NCBI RefSeq assembly: GCF_006345805.1
Contig: NC_043000.1
Location: 86,862,001-86,926,000, forward strand
From: Octopus sinensis
Lineage: Eukaryota
Reading direction: 5' to 3'
DNA: 64,000 nucleotides
A program made the position numbers and the translations under genes. This document shows positions 1,109 through 61,694 of this stretch, in pieces (the stretch's first letter is position 1; every line of letters begins with the position of its first letter). Under the pieces are notes generated by a model. The model ran no database searches. It was given only the letters and a program-made list of their open reading frames with translations, and was not told the origin of the DNA.

Positions 1109-1409
1109 ACTTCTACTACAACTACTACTACTATAACTCCTAGATGTGTACTTATTTTAATTCATGTGTTTACATGCATGTTTAAAATAACACACATTTC
1201 TGATATGAAAAATTTCATAATTAGAATAAATGTATGTAATTCTTTGAATATTGACACTTCCTGGTATAAGATAAGGAGCCAAAAAAAATCTTTTAACAGA
1301 AGACAGCAGTAAATATAAATAAGAGCCCATTTTGACTGTTAATTTTTTTATTTTCATTTCCTCGCAAACTATATATGTATATATACATACACACACACAT
1401 GTGTAAATA

Positions 1410-1464
<55 letters not shown>

Positions 1465-1499
1465 ATGTGCATATGTATGTAAGTTGTCTAAAAGTCCAT

Positions 1500-1640
1500 A
1501 AGCCAGGAAATAATGGTTACCTCTGATGAGTGCAGGGTTACATAATCGGATTGTTACTTAACACTCCATTGAATCCCTAGCACAAAACCGATTGGTAAGA
1601 TGAGCTGTAATGGATATATAATACTGTACGCTTTGGATAA
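1500..1640 (+). mobile_element. Penelope-like element terminal fragment with degenerate hammerhead motif
   Basis: CTGATGA at 1523-1529, stem GTGC.AGGG/CCCTAGCAC, AAAA in place of GAAA, near-palindromic ACCGATTGGT, then GTA. A second copy lies on the minus strand at 22410-22535. Confidence 0.55.
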
Positions 1641-2639
1641 TATATATATCTATATATAAATTAGGATAAATATTACTTTATATTATTGGTTCCAACATTT
1701 CACCATTCAGGTTGCTTGGAAACTTGCATTGAATGTTTCAAGTGCATGTGGATGCTTAACCAGAACAGATCATCAGGGAACACTTCATTGTATTAAGAAG
1801 ATACATTAGTTCTCTGTAACTTAATGTAATAAAGTGTTTGCTATTGATCTACTCTGGATCACTTGGAATATCCTTATATATACATATATATATATATAAG
1901 GGAAGAGAAAATAGTGCTTGAGTAAAAAAATCAAATTGCAAGTTATAACTAATTTCTTCCTGTTGGTGTTTGAAAATATTCTACTGTTATTTATTGCAAA
2001 TGCATGCAAGCACGCATGCACACACATGAACACACACACATACATATGAAAGAAAGAAAATAAAAAGAAAATAAAAAAAAATTAATAAAAATAATATCTA
2101 AAAAGCCAGAAAAATCAAATAAACAAAAAAAAATTATCTAGATTTTTTTCTCGTTTTTTAAGTTATTACAAATTTTCTAAAAGGTTCTTCTTTTCAATAT
2201 TATAATAATTTTAATGTAAAAGGTACTAGTATAGTTTTAAGCATACTAACACATGAATCTTTGTGCCAAGTATTTGTGAGTTTGTGTTGTTGTTGTTATA
2301 ATTGTCTGACCCTGAATCAGCTCTGATTGAATAGATCAATCATCTAAGCTGTTTCACTTTCGACAGCTCCTGTCATAATATGTCTTGGATTACATTGTCG
2401 AATGTGTCCTTCCTTTTTTAAGATTGTAGTGTTGATTTCAAGGAGATTTAGCTACTGTTTCCAGCAGGTCAAACAACTACATAAATACTCCCTTCTTGGT
2501 GTGTGCATATATGTGTGTGTGTGTGTGTATGTATTTGTCTGTACACGTTGGTGTAAATTAGTAATATTTCTGTCATTAAATGAAAATTACTATGGCATAA
2601 ACATCTCAACACTAACAGTTATCTTAACTATGCAACACT

Positions 2640-2771
2640 TTTATATATATATATACATGTATGTATATATGTATGTATATATATATGTATGTATTTATGT
2701 ATATATAAATATAATGATATATATATAAATATATATAAGTATATATATATGTATGTATATATATGTATATA

Positions 2772-2824
<53 letters not shown>

Positions 2825-2890
2825 TATATATGTATGTATATATATATGTATGTGTATATATGTATATATATATATGTATGTATATATGAT
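2640..2890. repeat. (TA)n/(TATG)n compound microsatellite. Similar tracts at about 1410-1470, 3180-3345, 3495-3580, 9690-9900, 11588-11700, 17800-17992, 18985-19075, 21790-21850, 22320-22380, 24795-24868 and 50115-50172
   Basis: Direct reading. These tracts explain the YIYI-type ORFs in the track. Confidence 0.95.
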
Positions 2891-3513
2891 CATCATCATA
2901 TTCTCCTTGTCTTGACAAGTGCATACTGATTGTAAACAGTCCCAATGATATCATTTGTTTGCAACCCTCCATATAAACATGACCAGGCTGTTTAAAGTTT
3001 GATAGGCTGGAGGATTTATTACCTTGCTTGGAAATAAGTGAGGGTTGCCATCAAGAAGAGAGTCCAGACATAGACAATTCTGCCTCAACGAAGTCTCACG
3101 TGGCCCATGCAAGCATGGAAAAGTAGACATTAAAATGACAACAATGATAATACGCGCACACACACATACATATAAATTTATAAACATATATATACATATA
3201 TCTTCATACATATATGTGTGTATATATATACACACACACATATATATATATATGTATATATATATATGTAGTATATATATATATATATATGTATATATTA
3301 TATATATATATATATTATATATGTGTGTGTGTATATATGTATGTATATGATGACTTAAGTAAGCATTTACTATTTGTTTTTGTTTTTTACCTTTTTATTA
3401 CTTTTTGGTGAGGGATACTTAGGTTGATATATTTACTGATTTAGATAATATTCATGTTTAAAACTTCAGTTCAAAATGAAAATAATAAAACAACAGATAT
3501 ATACATATATATG

Positions 3514-3579
<66 letters not shown>

Positions 3580-5042
3580 GTTTGTGTGTGTATGAATGTA
3601 TATTTTTAAAAATGTATTTTAATACGACTTCATTAATCATTAAAATGTTTTTGTAACATTTTTTTTAGTACATTTTGTTTTAAATTTTGAAAAAAAAAGG
3701 GAAAGAAAATATACTAGAACATGTTCACCTTTCTCCATTTTCTTTGATTATTATTATTTATTTTTTATATATTTTTTATTATTATTGTTAATTTTATATA
3801 TTTAATCATCAGTTGGATGATATTCTAGTTATGTTTATTTAAATTTTTCTAGTTACATTTATTTAAATTTTTCATTTATGTGCATGTATATGTGTGGGTG
3901 TGTAACCATTAACAGATAATTTAAAGCTGAATCTTGAATGAAAAATTTAGAATGAAAATTTAAATTTTCCTTTTGCTCGTATATGTGAGTCAGTGAGTAT
4001 TTGTATGAATAAAGCAGAACCAGAAAATGGATGATGTATAAAAGAAAAAAAAAATTGGAAAAAATTAGCACAAAAACAAATCAAAAAAATTCATTCCTTA
4101 AAAGAAAAACAATAAAAAACAAACTTATGTTGTCATCAATTATTCATTTCGATGATGATGTTTAACAAAATTTCTTTTAAAAAAGTACATCTCATATCAT
4201 ATTTTATAAATATATATAAATATATATATATAAAAACAAAAAATACGACCATTTTTCTTTTGTATTTTTAAGGGAGATTATCCCAGGATTCCTTTTTGTT
4301 CCAATTTTTATTTTTTCTAGTTTATATTTTTTTCTCTAATTCATATTTATTTTTCAAAAACGAAAAAAGTCCATTAAACATAGTAGTTTTCTTAGAAAAA
4401 TAATTATAATTTAGCTAATTATGATTTGCAAAATTTCTTTGATAAATTTGTTCATTATTTTATTTGTATGTATGTTGTTGTTGTTATTATTATTATTATT
4501 ATTATTATCATTATTATTATTATTATTTAATTTTTTCCCCTTTGAATGCATGCATGTCTAAAGTATAAATGTTTCTTTTATTGAATGTCACTGAATGTTG
4601 AAAAAAAATATGAATTATGAACTTCTGAAATGTAATTCAGTAAACAGGTAAAAAAAAAAAAAGATCAAAACAAAACAAATAAAAAAGAGAAATATAAAAT
4701 GAATAAACAAAAAGAAAAAAGAGATAACAAACACAAAAAAAAAGAATGAAAAAAATAGCAAAAATGAAAAATGAACTAAAAATGATATAATTCTTTCTTT
4801 TTTCAATTTCTTGATACATCTTTCATCGAGTTATGTATCATTGTGCCATAATGATTTCAAATTTTAGAACAAGGCTAAGTTGATAACATTGACCCTGGTG
4901 TTTAACTGGTACTTATTTTATCAATCCCAAAAGGATAAAAACAAAGTTAACCTCAGCAGAATTTGAACTCAGAACACAATGAGTCAAAAAAAAAAAAATC
5001 CACTTGTCCAACTCTAATAATTCTGCCAGTTTGCTACCTTAA

Positions 5043-9916: not shown

Positions 9917-11584
9917 CTAGAAATAACTTAGAAAGGTTTTGGCCATTATTGGCCCAGGCCATGTCTAACTTAATAGCACCACCTGGCGAAGTCTTTCAAT
10001 TCAGGATTTGGGCACCGAGGCCCATTCGAGCAGAGAGTTATTGTTTGCGGAGACATCTGGGTGTGGGTGGTTTGTCCGGGACTGTTTGAAGGAATTTGTC
10101 CAAAGACTTCTTGAATTTTGTGTGGTCAGTTTTTGTTTTGACGTGTCCTGGTGTAATATTGAAGAGAGCGGGTCCAATTGAGGTGAAATAATTGTGCCGT
10201 ATTGTCGTTATGTGATGCGATTTAGATTTTTGTTGTGGACGGATGGCACGTGGTCCAAGCCTTGGATGTTTTTTGGAGGTGATGCCAACATCATTCGGAC
10301 AGTGCTGATGGAATATTTTCCACATCATACAGATAATGTAGTGTTCACGGCGTCGTTGGAGTGAATACAGTTTCAGTTTCTCTAGTCTACCCCAGTAGTC
10401 AAGGTCTGACATGCCATCTATCTTTTTTGTGATTGACATTTGGGGAGCTTCAATTCTCATAATATTTTGTTTTGTGTAGGGAGACCACAGTGGACAGCAG
10501 TATTCAAGGTGGGGTCGGGCAAAAGTGGAGATAATGGTGTGGGAATCTCTCGACTGGAAGGTTCTGAGAATCCAGGAACACATTCTGCGGGCTATATCAA
10601 CTTTGCTGCTTATATGTGTAGCCCAGCTTATGTTGTTGTCCACTGTTACTCCCAAGTCTCTGATGTTGTTAGACGCCATGAGAATTTCTCCAGAAGGAAA
10701 GGAGTATGGGAGTTTCAGAGCATCCTCCCTTCCAAAGTGGATCAGTTTGAATTTGTCTTCGTTTAGCAACATGTTGTTCTTTTCTGCCCATTGGACAACA
10801 GCCAGTAAGTCTGACTGAAGGCTTTTTCGGTCATCCACGCCATTGATGACCTTCTGGAGCTTGGAATCATCAGCAAAGGTTCTGATGTTACTGTGTTTGA
10901 TGGTGTCAGTAATATCATTAATGTAGATGATGAAGAGAAGTGGGCCTAACACAGTGCCTTGTGGGACACCACTGCTGACTTTGGCTGGGCTGGATTTGAC
11001 TCCTTCGACTACAACATGTTGGGTTCTGTTAGACAGGAAGCACTTGATCCACTGCAGCAGCTTTCCAGTGACACCAATATTGGACAGCTTTCTCAAAAGG
11101 ATCTTATGATCAACCCTGTCAAAGGCCTTGCTGAAATCAAGGTAGATGACATCAGTGTTGGAACCCTCTCCCAAGGCTCTCAAAATGTCATCAAAATGAT
11201 GCAGTAGCTGCGTCAGGCAATCTCTTCCATTACGGAATCCATGCTGGTTGGAGTTCAGCATATTAAGACTCTCGAGGAAGTGAGTCATACGCGATCTCAG
11301 CACTCTCTCAAATACCTTAATGATATGTGAGGTGAGTGAGATTGGACAGTAATTCACGGCAAGCGATTTGTTTCCTTTTTTGAAAACTGGGACAACAGAC
11401 TGGGATAGAGTCTTCTGGTATATATCCAGCATCCAGTGAGTTCCGCCACAGATTGGCTAGAGGGGGTGCAAGTTGGTGTTGACACATCTTCAAAACACAA
11501 GCAGGGAACCTATCGGGACCTACTGCTGAATTGTGCTTCATTTCCTTTATTGCTGCTAAGACATCAGGAGCGCCAAAGGTTATA

Positions 11585-14099: not shown

Positions 14100-14352
14100 G
14101 GATATCTATATCATTGCATATATATATATATATATATCATTACATATATATATATATATCACTGCCAGATCTGACTGGCCTGGTGCAGCCTTCGGGCTCC
14201 CCAGACTCCAGTTGAACCGTCCAACCCATGCTAGCATGGAAAGCGGACGTTAAATGAGGATGATGATGATGATCATCATTGCATATATATATTATATATC
14301 ATTGCATATATATATATATCATTGCATATATATATATATATATATATATCAT

Positions 14353-23441: not shown

Positions 23442-24781
23442 CATATATATATATATATATAATACATAATATATATATATATGGGCCTGACAGTGGCCAA
23501 GTGGCTGAGTTCCTTTCAGGCATTGGGCCTCATGGAGGCATAGTGACTGAGTTCCTTTCGAGTGTTGGGCTTTATGAAGGCAATGACCAAGACTTCTGAC
23601 ATTATGTCACGCTTGAGAAGGCCCATCAAGCTGAGCAAAATTGCAGTCGTGGCAGATACTGATGTCAAGCAAATTGGCACTCTTGGTTTCACGCAAATGG
23701 CACCTGTAAAAGCACCCACTATGCTCTTTGTGTGGTTGGCATTAGAAACGGCATCCAGCCATAGAAAACCATGCCAAATCAGCGTGCTAGCCCAGTTAAA
23801 CCATCCAACCCATGGACAACAGACGTTAAATGATGATGATGCTGATGATGATATATATACATATATATTATTCATCACAATATGCTAAAATACATTCATG
23901 TATCTCTGGATGATTTGCTGGTCTCTGTAAGTGGTCTGGTATGTTTGTGCCTTATTGATACATATCAGCACCGTACAGACCGAGCTGAAGGCCAGCAGGT
24001 CTGCTAGTATATATACGTATGTATGTATGTATGTATGTATGTATACTATTGTAATGCCCATTTTCCTTACAATAAAAGTTGTCTGTCTGTCTTCTGTCTC
24101 TTCCCTGCTCTATCTCACTTGATTTTTCTTCCTAACCCCACTTTCTATCTGTCTCAGGTATTTTTTCTCTAGGGCAAAAAAGAGGTAGAGGTAGTGAGAG
24201 AGACACACATATACAACCAGAGAGAGTGTGACAGGGAGATAGTGAGAAAAATTGACATATAGACACGGAGAAAGAAGAGGTCTGGCATCTCACTTGTGTT
24301 TTTTCTCCATAACCTGCTTTCTCTGAGAGAAAAAGAGGTATAGGCAGGGAGAGAGAGGAACACATATACAACCAGAGAGAGAGAGGGAGATAATGAGAGA
24401 CATAGAGACACAGAGAGGGACATATAGACAGAGAGAAAGCATAGGTCAAGTGGCGACTTCAAAGGAATAAATGTTATGTATTAAGTTGAAGGTGGATTGA
24501 GTGATAGGTGGAGTATTTTTGCATACTGTAAAAAGCACTACAGTGAAATAGACAGTATGTGGATTGCTAGAAATAGGATCCAATAAACTACCAACTTGGC
24601 CCCACCATCATTCTGTTTTCAGAAAATAAGTGCACAATGGTCAAATTAATTGAAACAACACATAAAAGCTACTATATTATCAATTTTATTTAGTGTTTTC
24701 AGCAGTCAACATACAAACAAACAAACAAACACACAAGCAAACTTTGCTTTTTTTAAGTATATAGATAAGATATATATATGC

Positions 24782-24872
<91 letters not shown>

Positions 24873-25289
24873 GGGAAGTCAAAAATTATCCACACTTTCG
24901 CCCGCCATAATATATCTTTATTATTGTCACACTGCCTTCTGCGCATGTGTGCTTATAGTTTGTACTATTGTGGTCACATGATTGAAGTTTGAGCCGGATC
25001 ATGCAGTTTTTCTTTCTGGCTTTACAGTGTAAGCATGGCTGCTCCACTAGCAATGTGCACCAAAGAACAAACATGCCATACACAAGTGCAAACCATAATG
25101 GTAACAGAAAAAATATAGTGAAACATTAACTACACAAAGACGCCTTCCTAACTTGACAAGCACCCCACCAATGGCTGTGTAAAATATAGGAGGTTTTTAT
25201 GCTGCACCTTGTATTACGAACATTAAAACAAATACTAAATAATAGCCTAGTGGTTAGGGTCTTGCACTCATGACTGTGAGATAATCATT

Positions 25290-25655
25290 ATCATCATCGT
25301 TTAGCATCCGCTTTCCATGCTAGCATGGGTTGGACGGTTCAACTGGGGTCTGGGAAGCCAGAAGGCTGCACCAGGCCCAGTCTGATCTGGCAATGTTTCT
25401 ACAGCTGGATGCCCTTCCTAACGCCAACCACTCTGTGAGTGTAGTGGGTGCTTTCTACGTGCCAGACGAGGCTGGCAGACGGCCACGCTCGGATGGTGCT
25501 TTTTACGTGCCACCGGCACGGAGGCCAGGTGAGGCTGGCAATGGCCATGATCAGATGGTGCTTTTTACGTGCCATAGGCACGGAGGCCAGTCGGGGTGGC
25601 ACTGGCAACAGCCACGTTCAGATGGTTCTCTTACATGCCACAGGCACTGGTATCC
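25290..25655 (-). mobile_element. RTE 3'-UTR-derived retroposon with three diverged ~62-bp units, nested inside a tRNA-derived SINE (25245-25870)
   Basis: Tail CCAACCCATGCTAGCATGGAAAGCGGA..(TGA)n on the minus strand. The interrupted SINE head (AGCCTAGTGGTTAGGG) resumes after 25655. Confidence 0.75.
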
Positions 25656-31815: not shown

Positions 31816-31904
31816 CAACAACAACAACAATACTAATAATAACAACAATAATAATAATAATAATAATAATAATAGCTACTTTGATGACAATGATCATCAT
31901 CATC

Positions 31905-33645
31905 ATCATCATCATCATTTAACGTCCGCTTTCCATGCTAGCATGGGTTGGACGGTTCAACTGGGGTCTGGGGAGCCCGAAAGCTGCACCAGTCCAGTCA
32001 GATCTGGCAGTGTTTCTACAGCTGGATGCCCTTCCTAACGCCAACCACTCCGAGAGTGTAGTGGGTGATTTTATGTGCCACCGACACAGGTGCCAGACGA
32101 GGCTGGCAAACGGCCACGCTCGGATGGTATTTTTTATGTGCCACCGACACAGGTGCCAGACGAGGCTGGCAGACGGCCACGCTCAGATGGTATTTTTTAT
32201 GTGCCACCGACACAGGTGCCAGACGAGGCTGGCAGACGGCCACGCTCGGATGGTGTTTTTATGTGCCACCGACACAGGTGCCAGACGAGGCTGGCAGACG
32301 GCCACGCTCGGATGGTGTTTTTATGTGCCACCGACACAGGTGCCAGATGAGGCTGGCGAACGGCCATGATCGGATGGTGTTTGTTACGTGCCCACAGCAC
32401 GGAGGCCAGTCGATGCGGAACTGGCTACGGCCATGTTCGGATGGTTCTCTTGTGTGCCACCGGCACTGGTACCACAAAGATACAGATTCCATTGATGTTC
32501 ATCTATTTTGATTTGTTTTGATTTGATTTTCACTTGCCTCAACAGGTCTTCACAAGTGTCACAAGAAGGAAGGTGTGCACAGGTGGACTGACTACGTCCC
32601 AGGTAGGGGCCATGGGTTATGGCCTGACTAGTCTTGCCGGGTCTTCGGATGGTGTTTTTATGTGCCACCGACACAGGTGCTAGATGAGGCTGGCGAACGG
32701 CCACGATCAGATGGTGTTTGTCATGTGCCCACAGCACAGAGGCCAGTCGATGCGGTACTGGCTACGGCCACTTTCGGATGGTTTTCTCTTGTGTGCCACC
32801 GGCACTGGTACCACAAAGATACAAATTCCATTGATGTTCATCTATTTTGATTTGTTTTGATTTGATTTTGATTTTGATTTTCACTTGCCTCAACAGGCCT
32901 TCACAAGTATCACAAGGAGGAAGGTATGCACAGGTGGACTGACTACGTCCCAGGTAGGGGCCATGGTTTATGGCCTGACTAGTCTTGCCGGGTCTTCGGA
33001 AGGTGTTTTTATGTGCCACCGACACAGGTGCTAGATGAGGCTGGCGAACGGCCACGACCGGATGGCGTTTGTTATGTGCCCACAGCACGATGGCCAGTGA
33101 TGCGGTACTGACTACGGCCATGTTCGGATGGATTCTTGTGTGCCACCGGCACTGGTACCACAAGCAGTACTGACTACTTTTTATGTGCCACCGACACAGG
33201 TGCTAGATGAGGCTGGCGAATGGCCACAACCGGATGGTGTTTGTTATGTGCCCACAGCACGATGGCGAGTGATGCGGTACTGACTACGGCCACGTTCGGA
33301 TGGATTCTTGTGTGCCACCGGCACTGGTACCACAAGGATACAAATTCCATTGGTGTTCATCTATTTTGATTTGTTTTGATTTGATTTGATTTTCACTTGC
33401 CTCAGCAGGTCTTCACAAGTGTCACAAGAAGGAAGGTATGTACAGGTGGACTGACTACGTCCCAGGTAGGGCCCACGGGTTATGACCTGACTAGTCTTGC
33501 CGGGTCTTCGGATGGTGTTTTTATGTGCCACCATGTTCCCACAGCACGGAGGCCAGTCGATGCAGTACTGGCTACGGCCACGTTCGGATGGTTTTCTTGT
33601 GTGCCACAGGCACTGGTACCACAAAGATACAAATTCCAAATGATG
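31905..33645 (-). repeat. Higher-order tandem array derived from an RTE LINE 3' end
   Basis: Five consecutive 62-63 bp units (ATGTGCC at 32073, 32136, 32199, 32261, 32323). Larger blocks are marked by GGTACCACAA at 32468, 32807, 33154, 33326 and 33615. A single (TGA)n tail lies at the low-coordinate end. Confidence 0.9.
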
Positions 33646-38430: not shown

Positions 38431-41400
38431 TGATTATTTATAATAATTCTTCATTGAAAGTATATAAAAATAAAACAATCTCCGAACCTTTTATTACATT
38501 ATTCATGTTATATGGTTTGTTATTAAATTAATATGTTGCTTAGCGTTTGTGATCAATGTGTTTACCAGACATAGACCCACTGTTCGCATAAGATAATGTA
38601 GGAAAATAGAAAAAAACCATTTCAGTGACATTTCACGTTTTATTGATCAATGAACCTGGAATTGCTATTGTACAGGTAAATTTTTTAAAAGAATTATCTA
38701 TCGTGTGATACTTGGGGAAGTAATAAAACTATTTGGTATCCTATCTTCGCCTTTCATTCCTTGTAACTTCCCGGATAAAAAAAAAGCATATTTTTTAAAT
38801 GAAATTATGGAGAGACGACTTTTCCGAATGTATATGTTACAATTATGTCGATAAAATCAAGATATTTCTGCAAAAATATCATTTAAAAACGCGCATTTTA
38901 AAAAGAGTTATGAGATGACAATGTCAAAAGAGGGAGAATGATATGAAACTTAAAATTTGTTTTCGTAATATTGTCAACATAACCGTAATCTACACCCTCG
39001 AAATCGTGTCTGTAAGATTTCAAAATTATTCATTTTAAATAAAGTTATGTACCAAACTGTTTGGGGTACCAAACTGTACATATTCCATTGTTTATATTAT
39101 TTCTCTTCAATTCGTAATGTGTATTTCATTAACTACTTTTCTTTATATCTCTTTGTTTCACACTTCTACCTTATTTATTTATCTATTTTTAAAGTCTTCA
39201 CTCCATCTTTTATTGAAATAATTCTTTAATAACATTTCTATGAATCTTTAATGTATGCCATTGAAGGCCTTAAGTGTCATCGATTTCTTTAGCGCTTTCA
39301 CATATTTAGTACATGGTGCATAAAAATGTCCCGTATTATATTATTATTTGAAGGTTGTTTCTTTGGGTTAATCAAAAATATATTTTTGTTATGCTTAATT
39401 GCTCACAATTTATACTAGTTTCTTTTTAAATGTTATCCTTTATAAGCAGGTTTAATTTAATGCATTTTACTTAACAGTAATACATTAATTGGAAAACCTG
39501 CTTATGATATCGATTATTTATGAATAACAAACTAGATAATTAGATTCTAAAGCATATATTAGATTGTTGAATAGGAGTGATGGACAACACTGGTTTGATG
39601 CATTCAATCAGAGCATAAAAATATTGGGAAAAAACCTGGAGTAGCACGTTTGTTTAATATTAGTATGACAGATTTTTAAAATCTATAAATCCAATAGCCA
39701 TGTTCATATCAAGGAACAGAAATATAACCTTCTAGTAAAAAGAGAGGCCTTTCCTCTTGTCATTACTCAGTATTTACAGACCAAGCTATCTAATGACTAT
39801 TGATAACACTAATAGCGGTTGTGACGACAGACTACCGTCGTTTCAGGCTGAGGATTAAGTTGTTCGATCAATTTGAATTACTTGCTCCTGGATGTGCGTA
39901 TACAGACATGTGCACTTTTAACGTCTCAGGGAGAATCAACGTGTATCACAAGCACAACCCAGCTGACGAGCTTCTAAAATGTTTCAGTCACGAGATATGA
40001 GTTGACCTGGGGTTACAGAAAATTACATTTGCCCAAAAAGCTATGCTGCAGGACGGCAGCTGGGACCTTGTGGTTACGCAGTGAACTTGTTAACCTTTCG
40101 CTTACTGATGCTAATATAACGGTTTTTAATTTAGACACAAGGCCAGCAACTTTGAGGAGAGAGGATTAGTTTGATACCATCGATTCCAGTAATTGACTGG
40201 TACCGTATTAACTCCAGAGGAGGGGTGGACAAAGGTAAAGTTGACCTCGGCAGGATTTGAACTCGGATCGTAAATAAATCGAATAAATTATTGAAATAAT
40301 TTTCCCGCCACCCAAACGATTTTGCCCGCAGGTCGCCTCAACTAAATCTAATATATTACTTAAAGCTTTCAACTAATGAAGGACTCAAGTTGTTTTGTAA
40401 CAAAATATTTACAATTAGATTGCAGCAGTGATTTTAAAACCTACTCCTGTGTACGCCCGAGTTGTTATTTTTTTTTATAGTAATAGACTTTCATAAACTT
40501 TCAATAATATGCATATACAAATAATAACTAACCGTTTTACAAAATTTAATTAGAAAATTGGACAAAACAGAGAACACAATTGAAAAAATTAAAGAGAAAA
40601 AAACCAAAGCAATTCACCACCTTGGGTTGAATAGTTAGGGGCACTGGGAAACCTATCTAATGGTTATTGAGGCACACCAGCACGCTTGCAGTGTTGCTGT
40701 GGGTGATGGCAAGGCCGATGCACTGGAACAGCCAAGCACCCTCATGAGCCTCACCAGTTGCCTCTGCAAGGCAAGTTGCCAGTGAAGACAGTAATCTCGC
40801 AGTTAGTGGCCTGACCCCACCAAACATCTCGAACGCCACAGGATGGAAAATGTAGTTGGCCAACAGATGACGGTATTTCAGGATTTTGTTCCACTCGGCC
40901 ACAGGAGCTGTGGATCTCACCCTGACCACAGCATTTAGGATGTGAGAAGAAGCAAAGGAGTCGCTAACTGTGACATCCCAGACAAGGCATCTGCCTTGCA
41001 ACTAGATGGTTCCAAAATGGAGGGGGTGTTTGCCTGGGCCAAGCTCCTCTTGAGTATCAGGTTCCCACCTCAGGAGTCCAACAGGGTGACCCACTTGGGC
41101 CTGCTCTGTTCGCACTAGGCATTGATGACATCACCAAGTTGGGGGTTGAGCTAAACCTCAACATCTGGTATCTCGATGATGCTTGTTTGGGGGGACCTCT
41201 GGACAGGGTTTTTGCCATTGCAAACATGATGGTTGGGGAACTTGGTCACTGGGGTCTCTAAGTAAACAGCTCTGAATCCTCAACCACCCAGCTTCTCAAC
41301 ATCAACCAACTATTGACTTTTTTGCAGAGTCCTTCCCTTCCATTGCAGTCCCTCTCCCATCAGCTTGATGCTCTCTAGGAGCCCCAATCACTAACTTTGC

Positions 41401-41601
41401 CTTTGAGTCCATCTTCCAGTTGAAGGTGCCTGCTCTTGAGCAATTGCTGAAAAATATTGAAGCTATTGAATACCATCAAGGCTTTTTCAAAACTAAGAAT
41501 TACCTCTTGATCCCCAAGCTTCTGTACTTACTCAGAATCAGCTCATCTTACTGATTCCCATCGTGCCTCTAATGCTTTGACAACCTAATCTTTGAGAGAC
41601 T

Positions 41602-41880
41602 TGTGGGATGACGTCAGCAGCCGGGTGCGTTGACCGGAAGCTGGGGCAAGCGGAAGGGGTCAGCGGTCAGGCATGCGCAGGGAGCAGAAATTGCCCTCTT
41701 TCCAACGTGGGTCGTGCAGGTGACAAGACGTGTGAGGACGTCGCTAAGGGTTTGGGCTAGCAGCTGCTATCGTTAGTGTTCGGGTCGGGGCTGTGAGGAA
41801 GGACTAGTCATCACTGGAGGGTCTCCATCACTACGAAGAGAAGGTAGGTGCCTCTATATTCAAATCGCGCACTCACCACA
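41602..41880 (+). repeat. 5' LTR
   Basis: 271/279 identical to 45109-45387. Confidence 0.97.
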
Positions 41881-41925
41881 AGCTATTTTGGCCGTTCTTA
41901 AACATTCACATTTTTTTTCAACACG

Positions 41926-42707
41926 ATGTCTGCAAAAATTAGGATCGCCAGTGACGTCGTCAGACCTTTTAATGGCGAAGGCAATGTAGTGGCCTGGATT
42001 CGCAAAATCAGGCTGGTGGCGAGACTGCAGGGCATAAGCGACGTGGCGAGTCTTGTGGCGCTGTATTTGGAAGGGAGCGCGTTGACGCTCTACCTAGAGA
42101 TGGATGAAGAGGAACGGACCATCAGGCGGCGTTCGATGGTCAGAATATAGAGCGACGCTTGCGTGACGCCTACACGGAATGCAAGTACACAGCTTTCGCT
42201 AAGCTAGGTGCAATCAGGTGGACGGGAGGCCAAGTGGACGACTTTGCATCAGAAGCTAGAAGGCTAGCGACTCCGGGTTTGCCGGAGAAGGACTGGAGAG
42301 AGCAGCCCGACTGGCGTTCGTGAATGGGTTCCCCGACGATGTAGGGATTCACCTACAACGACTGCCCGGGGTTAAAAAGATGCCATTGAGCGAACTTGTA
42401 GCTCAGGCTCGCGCGTTGACGAGACACTCTGGGCGGAAGGCGATAGCGATGGCGGTGACGGAGGCGCGTAAAGACGGACGACGTCCCGAGAAAGAGGTAC
42501 AGAAGCTCACCGTGCAGCGAGAGCGGCCATTCTCAGGACGGTGTTTTAAATGCCAGAGCGGACATGGCGCGGGACTGTACGCAGCCGGGGCCCGTTTGCT
42601 ATCGATGCAGGCAGACAGGGCACACTGCCCGTGATTGCGACCAGGGAAACGACCGCGGGGAAGTTGCTGCCTCTCGAACTTTCCCCTCAAACGAGTAGAG
42701 GCGCTAT
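41926..42707 (+). pseudogene. gag with frameshifts; two CCHC zinc knuckles
   Basis: MSAKIRIASDVVRPFNGEG...; knuckles CFKCQSGH(M)ARDC and CYRCRQTGHTARDC after correcting one frameshift; at least 3 frameshifts in total. Confidence 0.8.
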
Positions 42708-45040
42708 TGGAGACGCTGCCATTGATTGACGTGGAGGCCGAGGGGGAGACGTTCAAGGCCCTTGTGGATACGGGCTGTACGACCACCCTGGTGACTTCGA
42801 GGGTGACGAAGGAATGGAACGGGGTGAGTAGTGTCCGGGCGGTCGACGGCAGCGAAATCCGTTGCAGAGGCAGCAGCAAGGTAGAGATAGTGGTGCGCGG
42901 CGCGACGCTAAGGCTGCAGGCAATTGTGACCGAACGCGTGATAGATGGAGTTGATGTGGTGATGGGGATGGACGCCATCAACTGCCTCGGTGGCGTCAGT
43001 GTTGTGGGAAATGAGATCACGTTCGGAAGCGTGAGGGCGTCGTGCACTGCGAGTCAGGATCGCCAGAGAGAGCAGAGCCCCGCGAGGGACTGCGCCGCTT
43101 ACACCATTGAGGACAAAGACTTTCAGGCGGCGTTCGATGGTCAGCGGTGGACGATAGAGTGGCGATGGAAGGACGAGCCCCCGACGCTGGAGAACAGGGT
43201 GAGCTGTTACCAGCATACCCTGAAAGGCCACGCCAGGGTCGAGTTTGAAGACGAGGTGGAGTGGTGGATCGAGGAAGGGGTCCTTGTCCCTTGGAAGGAG
43301 GAGATAGCGGGCGGAGTGCTACCCCTGATGGCGGTGGTGCAGCCTACGAAGGGAAAAGTCAGACCGGTGCTGGACTTCAGGGAGCTAAACCAGCACATAT
43401 CGTGTCACACGGGAGGTGAGGCGACAGACATTTGTGGTGAGGCATTACGTAAGTGGAGACAGTCGACTGAGGCTGCGACGATTGTCGACTTGAGATCGGC
43501 ATACTTGCAGCTCCATGTGAGCGACAAACTATGGCGATATCAGCTGGTGCGGTACAAGGGCTGGACGTACTGTCTAACCAGGCTGGGTTTCGGGCTGAAT
43601 TCCGCTCCGAAGATCATGGCGGCAGTGCTTAGGTCCGTCCTAGGGAAAGACGGCAAGATTAGAAAGGCCACCAGCTCCTACATTGATGACATTTTGGTGG
43701 ACGAAACTGTAGTGCCAGCCGACGAGGTAGTTAGACATCTGGAGAAGTTCGGACTGATTGCTAAGCCACCGGAGTCGATTGAAGGGGGAGCCGCGCTGGG
43801 GCTGAAGCTGCGAAGAGATGGATCAGGTGAATTGGTGTTCCGGAGAGGAAATGAAATCCCAGAGCTGAGTTCCAGCGTCAGCAGGAGAGAGCTGTTCTCG
43901 GTGTGTGGGAAGTTGGTCGGTCACTACCCGATCGCTGGATGGCTGCGCACGGCGTGTAGTTACACCAAGAGACGAGCAGAAGGAGAGAGGTGGGAGAAGG
44001 GACGGTGGCGATGATGCAGGAGATCCTAGAGAAGACAAGAGCGGAAGACCCGGTCAGGGGGAACTGGTACGTGCCCAAGACGAAATGCAGGACCGTCTGG
44101 TGTGATGCTAGCAGTATAGCGATAGGGGTGGTGTTGGCAATCGAAGGCACTGCGGTGGAGGACGCGGCCTGGCTTCGGAAAGCAGATGATTTCAACCACA
44201 TCAATGTCGCCGAATTAGACGCGCTGCTGAAAGGGGTGAACTTGGCCTTGAAATGGGGGCTGCGCACGATTGAAATGCGGACGGATTCGGCCACTGTGCT
44301 TGGCTGGGTAGGATCGCTTATCACTGGTGACAGGAGAGTGCGGACGAAAGGTGCTGCGGAGATGTTAGTGAAGCGCCGTCTAGGAGTTCTAGGTGAATTG
44401 ATCGCTGAATTCGGACTGAAGCTGAACGTGGTTTTCGTGCCTTCGGAGAAAAACAGGGCGGACGTACTGACCAGGGTGAAAAGAGCGTGGTTGGAAGAAC
44501 CGGAGGAGGCCCGGAAAGGGATAGCTGCGGCGTGTCGGTTGGATGAATCTGAACTGAAGAAACTGCATGCTATGCATCACCTGGGTGTGGACAGGACCCT
44601 GTATCTGGCAAAAAAAATTGATGCTGACGTCACTAGGAGAAGCGTCCGGAAGGTGGTCGGGAGCTGCGACAGGTGTCAGTCCATCGACCCTGCTCCGTGT
44701 GGGCATGAACAGGGAAGCCTTTCCGTGGAGCAGAACTGGAAAAGGCTAGCTGTGGATGTGACACACTACCGTCAGCGAATGTACCTCTCCATGGTCGACT
44801 GTGGGCTGGGCCGGCTGGCCATTTGGAGGGAGTTGAGATCGGGCATTGCTGACGAGATCGTGCAGATCCTGAACGGGATATTTTTAGAGAGAGGTCCCGT
44901 GGAAGAACTACTGATGGACAACGGGGCGGCGTTTCGTTCGGAAGCATTGAGGGTTATGCTTGATCAGTGGAATGTGCGACGCTTGTTCAGAGCAGCATAT
45001 AGGCCGAGCGGTAACGGGATCGTGGAGAGGCACCAAGGCG
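42635..45040 (+). pseudogene. pol: aspartic protease, RT, RNase H, integrase (frameshift near 44000; integrase C-terminus deleted near 45035)
   Basis: LVDTGC (PR); RPVLDFRELN, DLRSAYLQL, LGFGL, YIDD (RT); WCDAS (RH); HHLG..CDRC, LAVD, LLMDNG, IVER (IN). Confidence 0.93.
42644..42686 (+). promoter_or_regulatory. Programmed -1 ribosomal frameshift signal (gag-pol)
   Basis: G GGA AAC in the gag frame (42644-42650), 6-nt spacer, stem GGGGAAGTT/AACTTTCCCC (42657-42686). pol is in the -1 frame. Confidence 0.75.
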
Positions 45041-45108
45041 CTCTCCCGGTTGGATGGTGGAGTACAACATGGAGCGGAGAGATTGTGATCTTTAAGATCA
45101 GGGTGGCG

Positions 45109-45387
45109 TGTGGGATGACGTCAGCAGCCGGGTGCATTGACCGGAAGCTGGGGCAAGCGGAAGGGGTCAGCGGTCAGGCGTGCGCAGGGAGCGGAAATTG
45201 CCCTCTTTCCAACGTGGGTCGTGCAGGTGACAAGACGTGTGAGGACGTCGCTAAGGGTTTGGGCTAGCAGCTGCTATAGTTAGTGTTCGAGTCGGGGCTG
45301 TGAGGAAGGACTAGTCATCATTGGAGGGTCTCCGTCACTACGAAGAGAAGGTAGGTGCCTCTATATTCAAATCGCGCACTCACTACA
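45109..45387 (+). repeat. 3' LTR
   Basis: Preceded by purine-rich AGATCAGGGTGGCG and followed by the TSD AGACT. Confidence 0.97.
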
Positions 45388-48300
45388 AGACTCAAATGCT
45401 TAGTTAATGTAAGACTCTCTCCAATGTCCTGCAATTGGGCTGCATTGCCCAAGCGATTTGGAGGTCATTTTCTTTGTAAGTGTTCGTCCCTCTCTCCCCT
45501 GCTTCCTTTCCTCCACCCACACCTACTCCATCCTGGTGATCAACATCTCTCCTCTCCAACATGGACCAGTTCCAACAGGGATTTGGATGAAGCTCTCCAA
45601 CACTGGAGAGAATTGGGCTTGTCTGCTCCTGAGAAGGTGAAGGACTGTCGGACTCAGAGTGCTTGGAACAACATAATTTCGAAGGCCACCTTCAACTCCC
45701 TCTTCATCAAGCTGGACCAGTTTTCAAGGTGTCGCTTACTAGTGCCAAATACTCAGGTGACTGGATTGATGCCATTCTTGTGGCTAATGTTGGTGGCCTA
45801 CTCAGCTTGGACAAACTTTGTGTCTCCATTGCCCTCAGAGTGGAAGCTGACGTATGCACAGGTTTGATCTGTTGTTGTGGCAGGCTCCTCGATTACACAG
45901 GCCTCCATGGCCTTTCTTGCCACCTGAATGCTGGTCGCTTCGCACATTATATGGAGTTGAACCTGATACTCAAGAGTTGTTATTACAATTGTGAACAGTA
46001 AAATTGTTTTTAATGAAGTATCCAAGTATATGAACATTAAGATACCAGGTGAGTTATTGGGATTGACTTATCTGTTACATGCCAAAAAAAAAAAAGAAGT
46101 AACAATCATTTACTACCAATTTAATGTCTATTTTTCCACACTTGCATGGGTCAGATGAAGTTCATTGAAGCACATTTCCTACAGCCAGATGCCCTTTCTG
46201 TCACCAGCCCTCACCTTTTTTCCTTCTCCTCATACTCTTCCTCCAGTATATTTTTTCATGCTGGCATTGTTTTACAGCTGATGTCCTTCTTGTTACTAAT
46301 CCTTACCTGTTTTTCTCATATTTTACATGTCTTCAAAGGCACAAGGCAAAGACATAATTTGTTGACAGTCCCACTGCATGGCACCTTGAGCAAGTATCTT
46401 TTACAAGACCTTTAGTGGTATTGGTAGAGAGAAACTAAAGGAAGCCCATTGTAGATATGTATATCATCATCATCATCATAATTTAGTTTTTGCTTTCCAT
46501 ACTGGCATGGGTTGGATGTTTTGACTGGAACTGGTAAGCCAGAGAACTAAACCAAGTTCCATTCTATGGTCAAATTCCTTTCCTAATACCAACCACTCCA
46601 AGACCATAGTGGGTGCCTTTCATGTGTCATTGGCATGGGTACCTTTTATGTGTCACTGGTACCAGCTATGACTTCAATTTCACTTGACTTGACATGTCTT
46701 CTCAAGCACAGCAAAACACCAAAGATCTTGATCACTTGCCATTGCCTCTATGGGACCCAAAATGCTGGTCAAAACAAAAAGGAGGTTGCTCTTTTTATCT
46801 TCTTGTGTTGTTGTTTACTGTTTTGGTCGTATTTGCAGCAGTAAGTCAAAGAGAAAGATAGAGTAACAGTGAATAGAAGAGGGAGACAATGGTGGTATCA
46901 TTCTGCCTGTCATTTTAGCAGCAGTGGAGAAAGACAAAATGACATTTGCCATTGAAATGTGAGCCAGCGAAAGCTGTATCATAGTTGTCTTCTTTTCACC
47001 AACTCCTTTCAGCAACTAACTTGTCCTTGCAGGATCTTAGTATTTATAATTATCGCAGAACAGCAAGAAAGAGAGATTCATATCTCCGAGGACAATGGGG
47101 AAAACTGCTTTTGGTGGCATAGAAGAAGTCAAAAAGGTTAAGTGGTAAAGACATAAATTGACTTGGTAAGGCTATGTGTTCAATGTAATTGGTGTCAAGC
47201 ATTGTTCCTCCATGAGAAAATGCTGTTGTAATTTAAAGGGGAAGTGTATAGATTCAATTTCGAATCTATAAGCCCAAATGAAATCCACTCATATATTCAT
47301 ATACACACACACACATATCACTTGATAGCTGTGAGCAAGTGTCACATCATTCAAGTAGTGTCTTTTGTTTTTAATCTTTTGTGTAAACTTGCTTGGGTTT
47401 TCTACTTACTAAAGTCATTTATGAGGCTTTGGTCAGCTGTAGTAGAAAATACTGGCCCAAGGTGCTGCGTAATGAGACTGGACCTGAAACTATGTGGTTG
47501 GGAAGCAAGCTTCTTAACTACACAGTCATACCTGTGCCTGCTTCTCTCAGAGAAATGGAAGAAAGGAATACCATCTGGACAGTGGATATCTTGTGAAATC
47601 ATCATCATCAATGTCTGTTTTCCATACTGGCATGGATTGGATGGCTTGACAGGAACTGGTAAGGCCAGGGGCCACTCCAAATTCCATAGTTTGTTTGTCT
47701 TGGTTTCTACAGCTGGATGCCCTTCCTAACACCAACTTTCCCACAGAGTGTACTGGGTTCTTTTTATGTGGCACTAGCGCAGTTGCTTTTTAAGTGGCAC
47801 CAGCATCAGTGCTTTTTAGGTGGCACCAGCACCCATATCAATGCTTTTTATGTGACACTTTTGTCTTAGGATCTCAATTCCATTATGGTGGGTGGGATTT
47901 CTCAAGTACAGCAATACACCACATATCTTATCCCTCTGTCATCTCCTTTGTAAGGTTCAGCATTTTGAGATCAACCTTCAAAAATGATAAAGAAAATTAA
48001 AATGAATTTATTTACTAAATGCCAACAATATCTCTGAGTAGGGTTAATAAGTGTACATATAGACCAGATGTCTATAAACAACTAACTTTAAAAATTCTCT
48101 CGAGGCAATTGTAAAACTACAACACTTTATCTGTTACACTCAGAAGACTAGTTAATTTCCCAAGTGAATCTAATTTGGTTTTTAGATTATTTCATTTCAC
48201 ACCATCCACACTGAATTTTAAGTATTTCTGAAAATATGTCAGACTGCTTCAACTTTAAATAGGACGTGCTGTTATTTATTTATTTATTTATTCTGACTGA

Positions 48301-58170: not shown

Positions 58171-59079
58171 GATGAGGAACTTGAATTTCTTCGGCAATGT
58201 GGTTTGTCTGAAGATGAGATCTGTCTCAAGAAAGAACATGATTCTGCTGCAGAAGAAATACCAGCCCAGAAACGGAGCAGATATGGTATGAACCCTAGTG
58301 TACAAAAAGAAATTATACAGAATATAAATGAAAAAATAAATGAGAAAAAAGCTAATTCTAAAATTCCTAATTCATTTAATGGGGCACGCAATATAAGCCG
58401 ACTTCGGATGGAATTGGAGAATGCTGTTAGAACTAACAAAACCTCTCTAATGAACTGTTTAATTACCACAAAGACCAAAGACACTGATGTATGTGAAGAA
58501 CACCCTATTAATCAGTTAAAAGATATTTCTGATAGTTTGTTGACTAAAAAACGCAAAATCCATTCTCCAGTAAAGAATGGCACTTTCGACAAAACAGAGA
58601 CTGATGACACAGAAATAAAGTCAGAAAATATCTCCAAGGGTGTCGAAACATTACCAGAAGAAAATCACACAGTCAATCAGGTTTCATCTGATGAAAATTC
58701 CAAAAGCTTAGGTCTTACACATATCGAAGATGAAGTGCAACCTATTTCAAAAGAATTGATTTCCAAAAACTGTATTTCAACAGAAGAAATTCTTTTAATC
58801 AGTAGATTCAAAGAATATCATCCTGGCGAAAAAAATAATACTTTATATTTGAAAAATCTTTCTAAAAAAGTGACTGAATATGATCTGATGAAACTTTTTC
58901 TTCACTTTCAAACAGAAAAATTTCCCATTCAGTATAAATTGCTCTCTGGTAAAATGCGAGGACAAGCATTTATAACTTTTGAAACTGCACACATTGCAGA
59001 AGAAGCATTAGAACTGGTTAACGGTTATGTCTTGAAAGGTAAACCTATTATCATACAATATGGGAAAAGGCAATTTTAA
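58171..59079 (+). CDS. RBM41: RBM41 exon 2 (C-terminal RRM)
   Basis: ttttaag|GAT GAG GAA...; DEELEFLRQCGLSEDEI vs human DQETASLRELGLNETEI. RRM PGEKNNTLYLKNLSKKVTEYDL..LF..FQ...GKMRGQAFITF...ALELVNGYVLKGKPIIIQYGK is closer to RBM41 than to RNPC3. Confidence 0.92.
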   Translation, partial: DEELEFLRQCGLSEDEICLKKEHDSAAEEIPAQKRSRYGMNPSVQKEIIQNINEKINEKKANSKIPNSFNGARNISRLRMELENAVRTNKTSLMNCLITTKTKDTDVCEEHPINQLKDISDSLLTKKRKIHSPVKNGTFDKTETDDTEIKSENISKGVETLPEENHTVNQVSSDENSKSLGLTHIEDEVQPISKELISKNCISTEEILLISRFKEYHPGEKNNTLYLKNLSKKVTEYDLMKLFLHFQTEKFPIQYKLLSGKMRGQAFITFETAHIAEEALELVNGYVLKGKPIIIQYGKRQF

Positions 59080-60957: not shown

Positions 60958-61148
60958 GCCCCCGTGCCGGTGGCATGTAAAAAGCACCCACTACACTCTC
61001 GGAGTGGTTGGCATTAGGAAGGGCATCAAGCTGTAGAAACTCTGCCAAATCAAGATTGGAGCCTGGTGCAACCATCTGGTTTGCCAGCCCTCAGTCAAAA
61101 TCGTCCAACCCATGCTAGCATGGAAAGCGGATGTTAAACGATGATGAT
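60958..61148 (+). mobile_element. RTE 3'-UTR-derived retroposon with 11-bp TSD. Other copies of this tail at about 14160, 23700, 34560, 46470 and 47610
   Basis: GATATATACTG at 60947-60957 and 61149-61159; (TGA)n tail. Confidence 0.85.
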
Positions 61149-61694
61149 GATATATACTGTTGAGGGGTATTATTGTCTAGGAAAATTAGAGGAAGTGAGT
61201 GCAAGGGCAGGTAAAGTGGCATTCCCATCCAAAGAAATTAGGATGGGGGCAAATTAGGACAGACAAATAAGGGCAGAAATAACATAAGGCAGATGCCAGA
61301 CCTATAGGGCTGGGTATCAATGTAGGTAATAAAGTGGACATAAAGATAATAGACAAGTCTATAGTGGGTGGAAATATTTTACTAGAGGGGGTATGTAGGG
61401 TTGACTTGCCACTAAGAAAAGCTAGAAATAGATGTCAACTAGTAAAGAAAAGATTAAAAATAAAAAAACTAAGGTTAAGACAATGTTATAAAAGTAAAAT
61501 AAAATAAATAAAAAATAATTAATGTTAAAATAAAGTTGATGCTTAAAATTAAAAGTAAGAAATGAGCATCTATAGTGCTAATGAAGATATATTGTTAATG
61601 AGGCCTACAGAAGAACTATGGGCCTAAGGAATCTATGTATATATGGAGAGAAGGTTTAGTGCTGTTCATTTCCTTGTACTTATTCTTAGTGCAA

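Follow-up and report, generated by a model that had tools for sequence, protein, structure and literature searches.

A 5'-inverted copy of an R2-like retrotransposon in Octopus sinensis and its probable origin by twin priming

Results

A dead R2-like copy whose front part is inverted

We analysed a 64-kb stretch of the Octopus sinensis genome (contig NC_043000.1, positions 86,862,001 to 86,926,000; hereafter the window, to whose first letter all coordinates are relative), and report on a dead ~1.7-kb copy of an R2-like non-LTR (long terminal repeat) retrotransposon whose front part is inverted relative to its tail. An earlier reading of the same stretch, referred to here as the original prediction, had proposed that this arrangement arose by twin priming, in which both ends of a staggered break act as primers for the copying of the element's RNA. 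The composite is bracketed exactly at both ends by a single pair of target site duplications (TSDs), the 11-bp direct repeat GAGTTGTTATT at 40459-69 and 45974-84. This repeat occurs at only these two positions in 64 kb, with an expectation of 0.10 matches from shuffled sequence and two or more matches in 0 of 100 shuffles, and its presence exactly there agrees with the original prediction. The 3' end of the left copy on the plus strand (..TTATT) and the 3' end of the right copy on the minus strand (..AACTC) are the putative primers of the first-strand and the second cDNA, respectively.

The direct, 3' segment of the element occupies the minus strand of 40470-41064. Adjoining the left TSD copy is an A7 tail (40470-40476, T7 on the plus strand), followed by a 3' untranslated region (UTR) of ~180 nt (40477-40656) and by the C-terminal part of a restriction-like endonuclease (RLE; 40657-41064), which reads RSLAQANTPSILEP ... 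LVWDVTV ... KILKY ... to a stop at 40657-59. The poly(A) and the RLE-coding segment thus lie where they had been placed, with a tail shorter than the original prediction implied. The T7 is contiguous with the TT that ends the left copy of GAGTTGTTATT, leaving a 2-nt ambiguity (microhomology) in the position of the boundary.

The remainder of the copy lies on the plus strand in two pieces, and the motifs found in them bear out the proposal that the region from the reverse transcriptase (RT) to the zinc knuckle is inverted. The first piece (41065-41601, with the inner junction at 41065) encodes the RT palm, with QQGDPLGP and YLDD, and the thumb, and is broken by stops and frameshifts. The second (45393-45976) encodes the linker, the CCHC knuckle (CCCGRLLDYTGLHGLSC) and the initial part of the RLE (GRFAHYMELNLILK), and ends at what would be the internal priming point. 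The inverted part lacks a 3' end, UTR and tail of its own, and its 3'-most base (45976) abuts the right TSD copy.

The two segments overlap by an 18-mer, GAACCTGATACTCAAGAG, that is found once per strand, at 45959-76 on the plus strand and at 41047-64 on the minus strand, where shuffles lead one to expect 0. The minus-strand copy forms the 5' end of the direct segment and would mark the stop of the first cDNA. The last 3 nt of the plus-strand copy, GAG at 45974-76, close the overlap and at once open the right TSD copy, and the element itself reads GAGCTTGG (GAGCTT) after CTCAAGAG at the putative internal priming point. Both the overlap and the 3-nt microhomology between element and TSD had been noted before and were recovered here, the microhomology being on its own weak evidence for twin priming.

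A nested LTR retrotransposon of later date

The two pieces of the inverted segment are separated by an LTR retrotransposon on the plus strand (41602-45387) that lies outside the inversion event. Its two LTRs, each of 279 bp and bounded by TG..CA, lie at 41602-41880 and 45109-45387 and differ by 8 mismatches (97% identity), and it is flanked by a 5-bp TSD, AGACT, at 41597-41601 and 45388-45392. The open reading frames (ORFs) encode a CCHC gag-like part, an aspartic protease (PR), an RT with YIDD, RNase H (RH) and an integrase (IN) in the order PR-RT-RH-IN. Pfam matches were obtained for DUF7047, the protease, RNase H and integrase, and none for RVT_1 at E<0.01. Removal of the element and one AGACT in silico gave an uninterrupted host frame, CFDNLIFERLKCLVNV, in which ...CFDNLIFER continues to LKCLVNV... 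and fits the consensus FDxxLxxALxxVTNV of the host element's relatives. Because it has its own TSD and its excision restores the host frame, the LTR element is a later, independent insertion, and the same two observations, the intact 5-bp TSD and the restored frame, rule it out as the cause of the rearrangement.

The LTR element is compact (3.8 kb) and has a G+C content of ~55-58% versus ~31-38% for the region, and its gag-like, PR-RT and RH-IN ORFs are largely open. It may belong to Ty3/Gypsy, the type named in the original prediction, or to BEL/Pao.

The two halves belong to one RLE-encoding element

The three host pieces were stitched across their frameshifts into a protein of 504 residues, and a search of a 5.8-billion-protein collection with it returned 80 relatives. 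The best of these, 785-865 aa in length, have 33-36% identity to the stitched query and cover 99-100% of it in one collinear alignment. The joined protein reads ...YMELNLILK / RSLAQANTPSILEP, and the join lies inside a block that is conserved in the relatives, RHxAxNDVIRRALxSAGxPSVLEP, from which it follows that the halves are adjacent parts of one coding sequence. The continuity of the protein across the join that had been read from the window is matched in intact relatives, whose single unrearranged alignment with both halves shows that these are not pieces of different elements.

The assignment of an RLE to the element also held. A profile of the family aligned to the solved R2 proteins 9nl3_A and 9dou_A with E about 1e-22 over profile positions 56-741 of 788. 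The alignment to 9nl3_A spans the RT, the CCHC knuckle (C..CG..H....C) and the PD-(D/E)XK nuclease, with RH..N, EP, PD, DVT and K..KY in register. The profile matches the RTs of both R2 and L1, and the relatives match Pfam RVT_1, an RT of the type found in long interspersed nuclear elements (LINEs). The window copy retains the RLE motifs RH..N, EP, DVT and K..KY, and its PD stretch is deleted: besides one frameshift, the direct segment (40657-41064) has a 17-residue deletion that takes out the (R)PDG motif. Judged from these lesions and from the several stops and frameshifts along its length, the copy is evidently dead. A Pfam scan of the stitched protein gave no match, which is attributable to the truncation and decay of the copy. 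No apurinic/apyrimidinic endonuclease (APE) domain was found in the full-length relatives (950-1100 aa) among precomputed Pfam hits or by a Pfam scan, the window copy itself being truncated. The element can safely be described as an RLE-encoding LINE of the R2 group with non-specific insertion.

Tails, target sites and accessory domains of the relatives

Since no further copy of the family was found in the window or in a metagenome scan, the ends of relatives were read on contigs that encode them. The most informative is L004, a complete 3.16-kb element (1160-4317) with an A8 tail that lies inside unrelated DNA; the duplication on its two sides, AGTTAACACTC (1149-59 and 4318-28), is exact over 10-11 bp. 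L006 carries an AATAAA and ends in A27, with (TA)n of ~14-17 bp as its TSD. L003, L005, L007, L011, L012, L019 and L023 end in A8-A32, and those other than L007 in A8-A10. In a sub-lineage (L029, L051, L053, L063, L084 and L087), A7-10 is followed directly by (TAA)n, while L006 and L083 are flanked by (TA)n. These flanks suggest that the superfamily may contain microsatellite-targeting branches like those of Dong and some HERO families, which insert in microsatellites (PMC4640811).

Taken together, a short A tail, a TSD of 10-17 bp and a target that is non-specific or a microsatellite appear to be native to the superfamily, and the window copy, with its 11-bp TSD and its tail of A7, is consistent with this. 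Because relatives at non-specific sites likewise have TSDs of ~10-17 bp and end in a few A, the cut geometry looks native to the family. In particular L004, a full-length copy with a TSD of 10-11 bp and an A8 tail at an unrelated site, supports the proposal that the 11-nt staggered cut was made by the enzyme of the element itself. The site in the window had been described as apparently non-specific, and this description is strengthened by three observations: no Rfam family of RNA genes was detected anywhere in the 64 kb, the flanks of the insertion are unique and non-genic within the window as judged by blastn, and the relatives lie at unrelated sites. Because the Rfam search was empty across the window, rDNA, snRNA genes and spliced-leader genes are excluded as the target.

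Two further features of the ends were observed. At the 3' ends of L004, L005, L011 and L019, a hairpin-like stretch rich in G+C leads into TTT/ATT, and the tail is exactly A8 (e.g., gggccctgcggggcccattAAAAAAAA). The stretch may be a conserved RNA structure that the RT recognises; the window copy is without it. In addition, the TSDs of L004 (AGTTAACACTC) and of the window copy (AATAACAACTC), read in the sense of the element, are both 10-11 bp long, and in each the last letters, at the putative second-strand nick, are ACTC. This common ending (n=2) may be due to chance or to a weak cleavage preference of the RLE.

The full-length relatives (950-1100 aa) have, by precomputed Pfam matches, an N-terminal PHD finger, in some a UCH, OTU or SAP domain, and RVT_1. 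These accessory N-terminal domains (PHD, ubiquitin C-terminal hydrolase [UCH], OTU protease and SAP) were seen in relatives P0081-P0091, P0104, P0112, P0120, P0122 and P0123, and their role is perhaps in chromatin targeting.

Among 88 related loci, matches on both strands were found at only one, L045 (JGI metagenome contig Ga0210059_1036287, 1-2545). In this contig an antisense part of the RT (1-715) is separated by 317 bp of non-element DNA from a sense part that starts at 1033, with a 34-bp inverted overlap between 1-34 and 1033-1066. We rejected L045 as a second case of twin priming: the overlap is at the very end of the contig, a filler of 317 bp is unexpected, and no TSD is visible. It more likely represents two truncated copies, placed head to head, that the assembly graph has cut.

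Other features of the window

An intact 464-aa ORF with RVT_1 is present at 10038-11432 on the minus strand. Its best match among solved structures is L1 ORF2p, and a (TA)-rich repeat lies 3' of it. By this ORF, a second, APE-type-like LINE family seems to be present in the window. A 291-aa ORF with RRM_1 (58204-59079, plus strand) may be either ORF1 of a LINE or an exon of the host. A short interspersed repeat, SINE- or MITE-like (short interspersed nuclear element; miniature inverted-repeat transposable element) and ~80-190 bp long with 68-79% identity, is found at 46463-46640, 0.5 kb to the right of the insertion, and at about six further places (examples are 31899-32080, 47598-47687, 60961-61151, 14192-14273, 25281-25362 and 23690-23858).

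Discussion

A probable twin-priming origin for the inverted copy

A 5' inversion is the accepted footprint of twin priming, and twin priming by the element's own machinery is, in our assessment, the probable and best explanation of the copy described here. It explains without extra assumptions why there is a single TSD pair, why the inverted part has no tail, why that part abuts the TSD exactly, and why there are a short duplication and a microhomology. In published work, 5' inversions accompany TSDs of 10-20 bp, shorter overhangs being unable to prime (PMC4245944), and the TSD of 11 bp falls within this range.

The geometry of the insertion, the collinearity of its halves, the RLE and the native tail and TSD features are direct observations, and from them the following course of events can be proposed. 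The polyadenylated RNA of a non-site-specific, RLE-encoding (R2-like) LINE would have been inserted through target-primed reverse transcription (TPRT) at a staggered break with two 11-nt 3' overhangs, both of which acted as primers. The empty site would read ...GTACGCCC GAGTTGTTATT ACAATTG..., with longer flanks of ...CTCCTGTGTACGCCC and ACAATTGTGAACAG..., and the nicks would have fallen after the 11-mer on the plus strand and before it on the minus strand. The plus-strand end, ...GAGTTGTTATT-3', would have paired with the A tail, possibly over 2 nt, and copied the last ~590 nt of the RNA to give 40470-41064. The minus-strand end, ...AATAACAACTC-3', would have annealed through CTC:GAG to an internal site lying 18 nt downstream of the stop of the first cDNA, and the second cDNA would have run for ~1.1 kb towards the 5' end of the RNA before halting in the RT domain, giving the sequence from 45976 back to 41065. 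Joining of the two cDNA 3' ends at 41064/41065 would then have left a 5'-inverted and 5'-truncated copy with a duplication of 18 bp (or 15+3) and a TSD of 11 bp (or 8+3), into whose inverted part the LTR element was later inserted. We infer this order of events, as well as the making of both nicks by the element's own RLE and the use of a single RNA molecule.

Every prediction of the original interpretation that could be checked within the window was borne out; the mechanism itself is drawn from one locus. That locus has been read from one assembly, and several other points weigh against the interpretation. In the window, neither tblastn with the stitched protein nor blastn with UTR and segments detected a second copy of the family, a metagenome scan with the window protein revealed no close relative, and blastn with the flanks detected no paralogous empty site in the 64 kb. 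The A tail is only 7 nt long, TTATT/A is similar to the nick sites that APE-type LINEs prefer, and the window holds at least one RT whose closest solved structure is L1 ORF2p. Furthermore, models of R2 put second-strand cleavage after first-strand synthesis, and because of that late ordering an early use of the second nick is unexpected for the RLE class (PMC6895275).

Alternative explanations

The last points but one lead to an alternative in which twin priming occurred in trans, with the RLE transcript retro-copied by an APE-type, poly(A)-dependent LINE in the manner of a processed pseudogene, in which case the cut and the inversion would be uninformative on the RLE enzyme. The primed strand, TTATT followed by A, is a T-rich nick of the kind that L1-type endonucleases make, the ~11-bp TSD and the A tail are likewise L1-like, and the intact 464-aa RT in the window matches L1 ORF2p best among solved proteins (E 1e-11). 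LINE proteins generally favour their own RNA in cis, and the (TA)-rich simple repeat 3' of that RT hints that its 3' end may be other than a plain A tail. What makes mobilisation in trans the less economical reading is that distant relatives in unrelated samples have short A tails and 10-17-bp TSDs around full-length copies, so that these features look native to the family, and we regard it as unlikely. A final structure identical to that observed would also result if an ordinary 5'-truncated insertion on the minus strand had later undergone a chromosomal inversion, with a staggered break in the element and another break at its 5' junction. Inversions by staggered breaks are known from Drosophila to leave short inverted duplications at breakpoints, much as in the 18-bp overlap. 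One of the two breaks would have to have fallen 0-3 bp from the boundary between element and TSD, a coincidence of ~1 in several hundred or worse that twin priming predicts without an extra assumption, and the other breakpoint shows no duplication. A later inversion is, in consequence, decidedly unlikely.

A further alternative is two independent head-to-head insertions of the same family, or a misjoined contig. Head-to-head truncated copies do occur, and L045, with its antisense and sense parts and 34-bp overlap, may be such a case. LINE copies are rarely 3'-truncated, and here the plus-strand part is without tail and UTR, stops 18 bp beyond where the other part begins and adjoins a repeat that matches that part's far flank; as for a misjoin, the junctions are deep inside a 64-kb contig stretch with unique flanks. 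We consider these explanations very improbable. The least probable, to which we attach hardly any weight, is snap-back synthesis, in which the 3' end of the first cDNA folds back and primes on itself. Snap-back junctions with antisense sequence have been documented for the R2 protein in human cells (PMC11371274), and their inverted part would duplicate the direct part. In the window copy, the inverted part is instead the upstream 1.1 kb of the element, with only 18 bp in common, and the content of the segments thereby contradicts a snap-back origin.

What twin priming by an RLE-encoding element would imply

Twin priming is already known as a mechanism, and it is the enzyme class and the host that are new. 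In retrotransposition assays, 5' inversions have been obtained only for human L1 in human cells and for a single Nimb-2_DR insert (PMC4245944), and our literature search found no report of a twin-primed RLE LINE, the link between twin priming and RLE elements being met there in one paper only, as speculation. On balance, we lean slightly towards the view that twin priming is a general property of TPRT and not peculiar to APE-type L1 in mammalian cells.

If the interpretation is true, an RLE LINE, with its older class of enzyme, can nick the second strand and melt an 11-bp staggered target before the first strand has reached 600 nt, and the RT of such an element can begin from the second nick inside the RNA, where no more than 3 nt are paired. 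A strictly ordered R2 model, in which the second cleavage follows completion of the first cDNA, would be at odds with this. A clean inversion of an RLE LINE would further imply that a TSD of ~11 bp suffices for priming by the second overhang. These considerations have a bearing on the order of events in R2-like integration, now engineered for gene insertion, and on the origin of truncated or rearranged insertions. As one fossil locus, the copy represents a lead and not a demonstration.

Placement of the family and comparison with known systems

The named relatives, from Lepidoptera, Octopus, tardigrades, a horsehair worm and a green alga, are all annotated as "uncharacterized protein". The original prediction had assigned the element to the CRE clade. 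That clade includes CRE1, CRE2, SLACS and CZAR, and classical CRE elements target spliced-leader genes, a trait that is typical of them without strictly defining the clade. Insertion in spliced-leader (mini-exon) genes was not what we found: the window has no Rfam family, the flanks are non-genic, and the relatives lie elsewhere. A TSD on insertion, another trait of CRE, is present (11 bp here, 10-17 bp in L004 and L006) and does not discriminate, as R4 and some members of the R2 superclade share it. CRE and R4 are both described as forming TSDs on insertion (PMC3636483), and CRE, R2, R4 and NeSL are mostly target-specific, whereas HERO is mostly non-specific (PMC4640811). Tardigrade LINEs have been annotated as CRE, R2 and R2-NeSL (PMC11071193), and the tardigrade members of the family are compatible with CRE without establishing it. 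Non-specific insertion, together with the relatives in (TAA)n, is likewise compatible with HERO or R4/Dong. By description, on which alone they were compared, HERO, CRE-classified and R4/Dong-like animal elements resemble the family in having a single ORF with the RT followed by the RLE and in forming a TSD, and HERO also in its non-specific insertion. A literature search on PHD-bearing RLE LINEs and on names of CRE sub-clades yielded nothing usable.

R2 (9nl3, 9dou and 8gh6) has the same order of RT, linker, CCHC and RLE and integrates by TPRT. It differs in its rDNA target, the window copy being in unique flanks with no Rfam RNA gene in the window; in its N-terminal zinc-finger/Myb region, in place of which the full-length relatives here have a PHD finger; and in the outcome of insertion, which for R2 is mostly small deletions (PMC3636483) as opposed to the A tail and ~11-bp TSD of the window copy. 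BLAG, a group of non-site-specific R2-like elements of Blattella germanica (PMC7650587), has a single ~1000-aa ORF with RT, CCHC and RLE, inserts at random sites, and is similar to our family in size (~3.2-3.7 kb) and in the length of its 3' UTR (130-240 nt). BLAG has N-terminal CCHH zinc fingers and a BLAG-specific motif, whereas the relatives here have PHD, UCH, OTU or SAP domains, and these differing N-terminal domains rule it out as the same family.

The closest parallels to the rearrangement itself are the inversions of mammalian L1, whose 5' inversion by twin priming was described by Ostertag and Kazazian (2001, as cited in PMC4245944 and PMC2837659). They have in common with the window copy a single TSD pair, a direct 3' part with an A tail, an inverted part abutting the upstream TSD, a short duplication at the breakpoint, microhomology at the internal site and a TSD within 10-20 bp. 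The elements are of different kinds, L1 having an N-terminal APE and the element in the window a C-terminal PD-(D/E)XK RLE in a family with a single ~1000-aa ORF and, in its full-length relatives, a PHD finger. The hosts differ as well, in that the L1 cases are mammalian, whereas the inverted copy described here resides in the AT-rich genome of a non-mammalian host.

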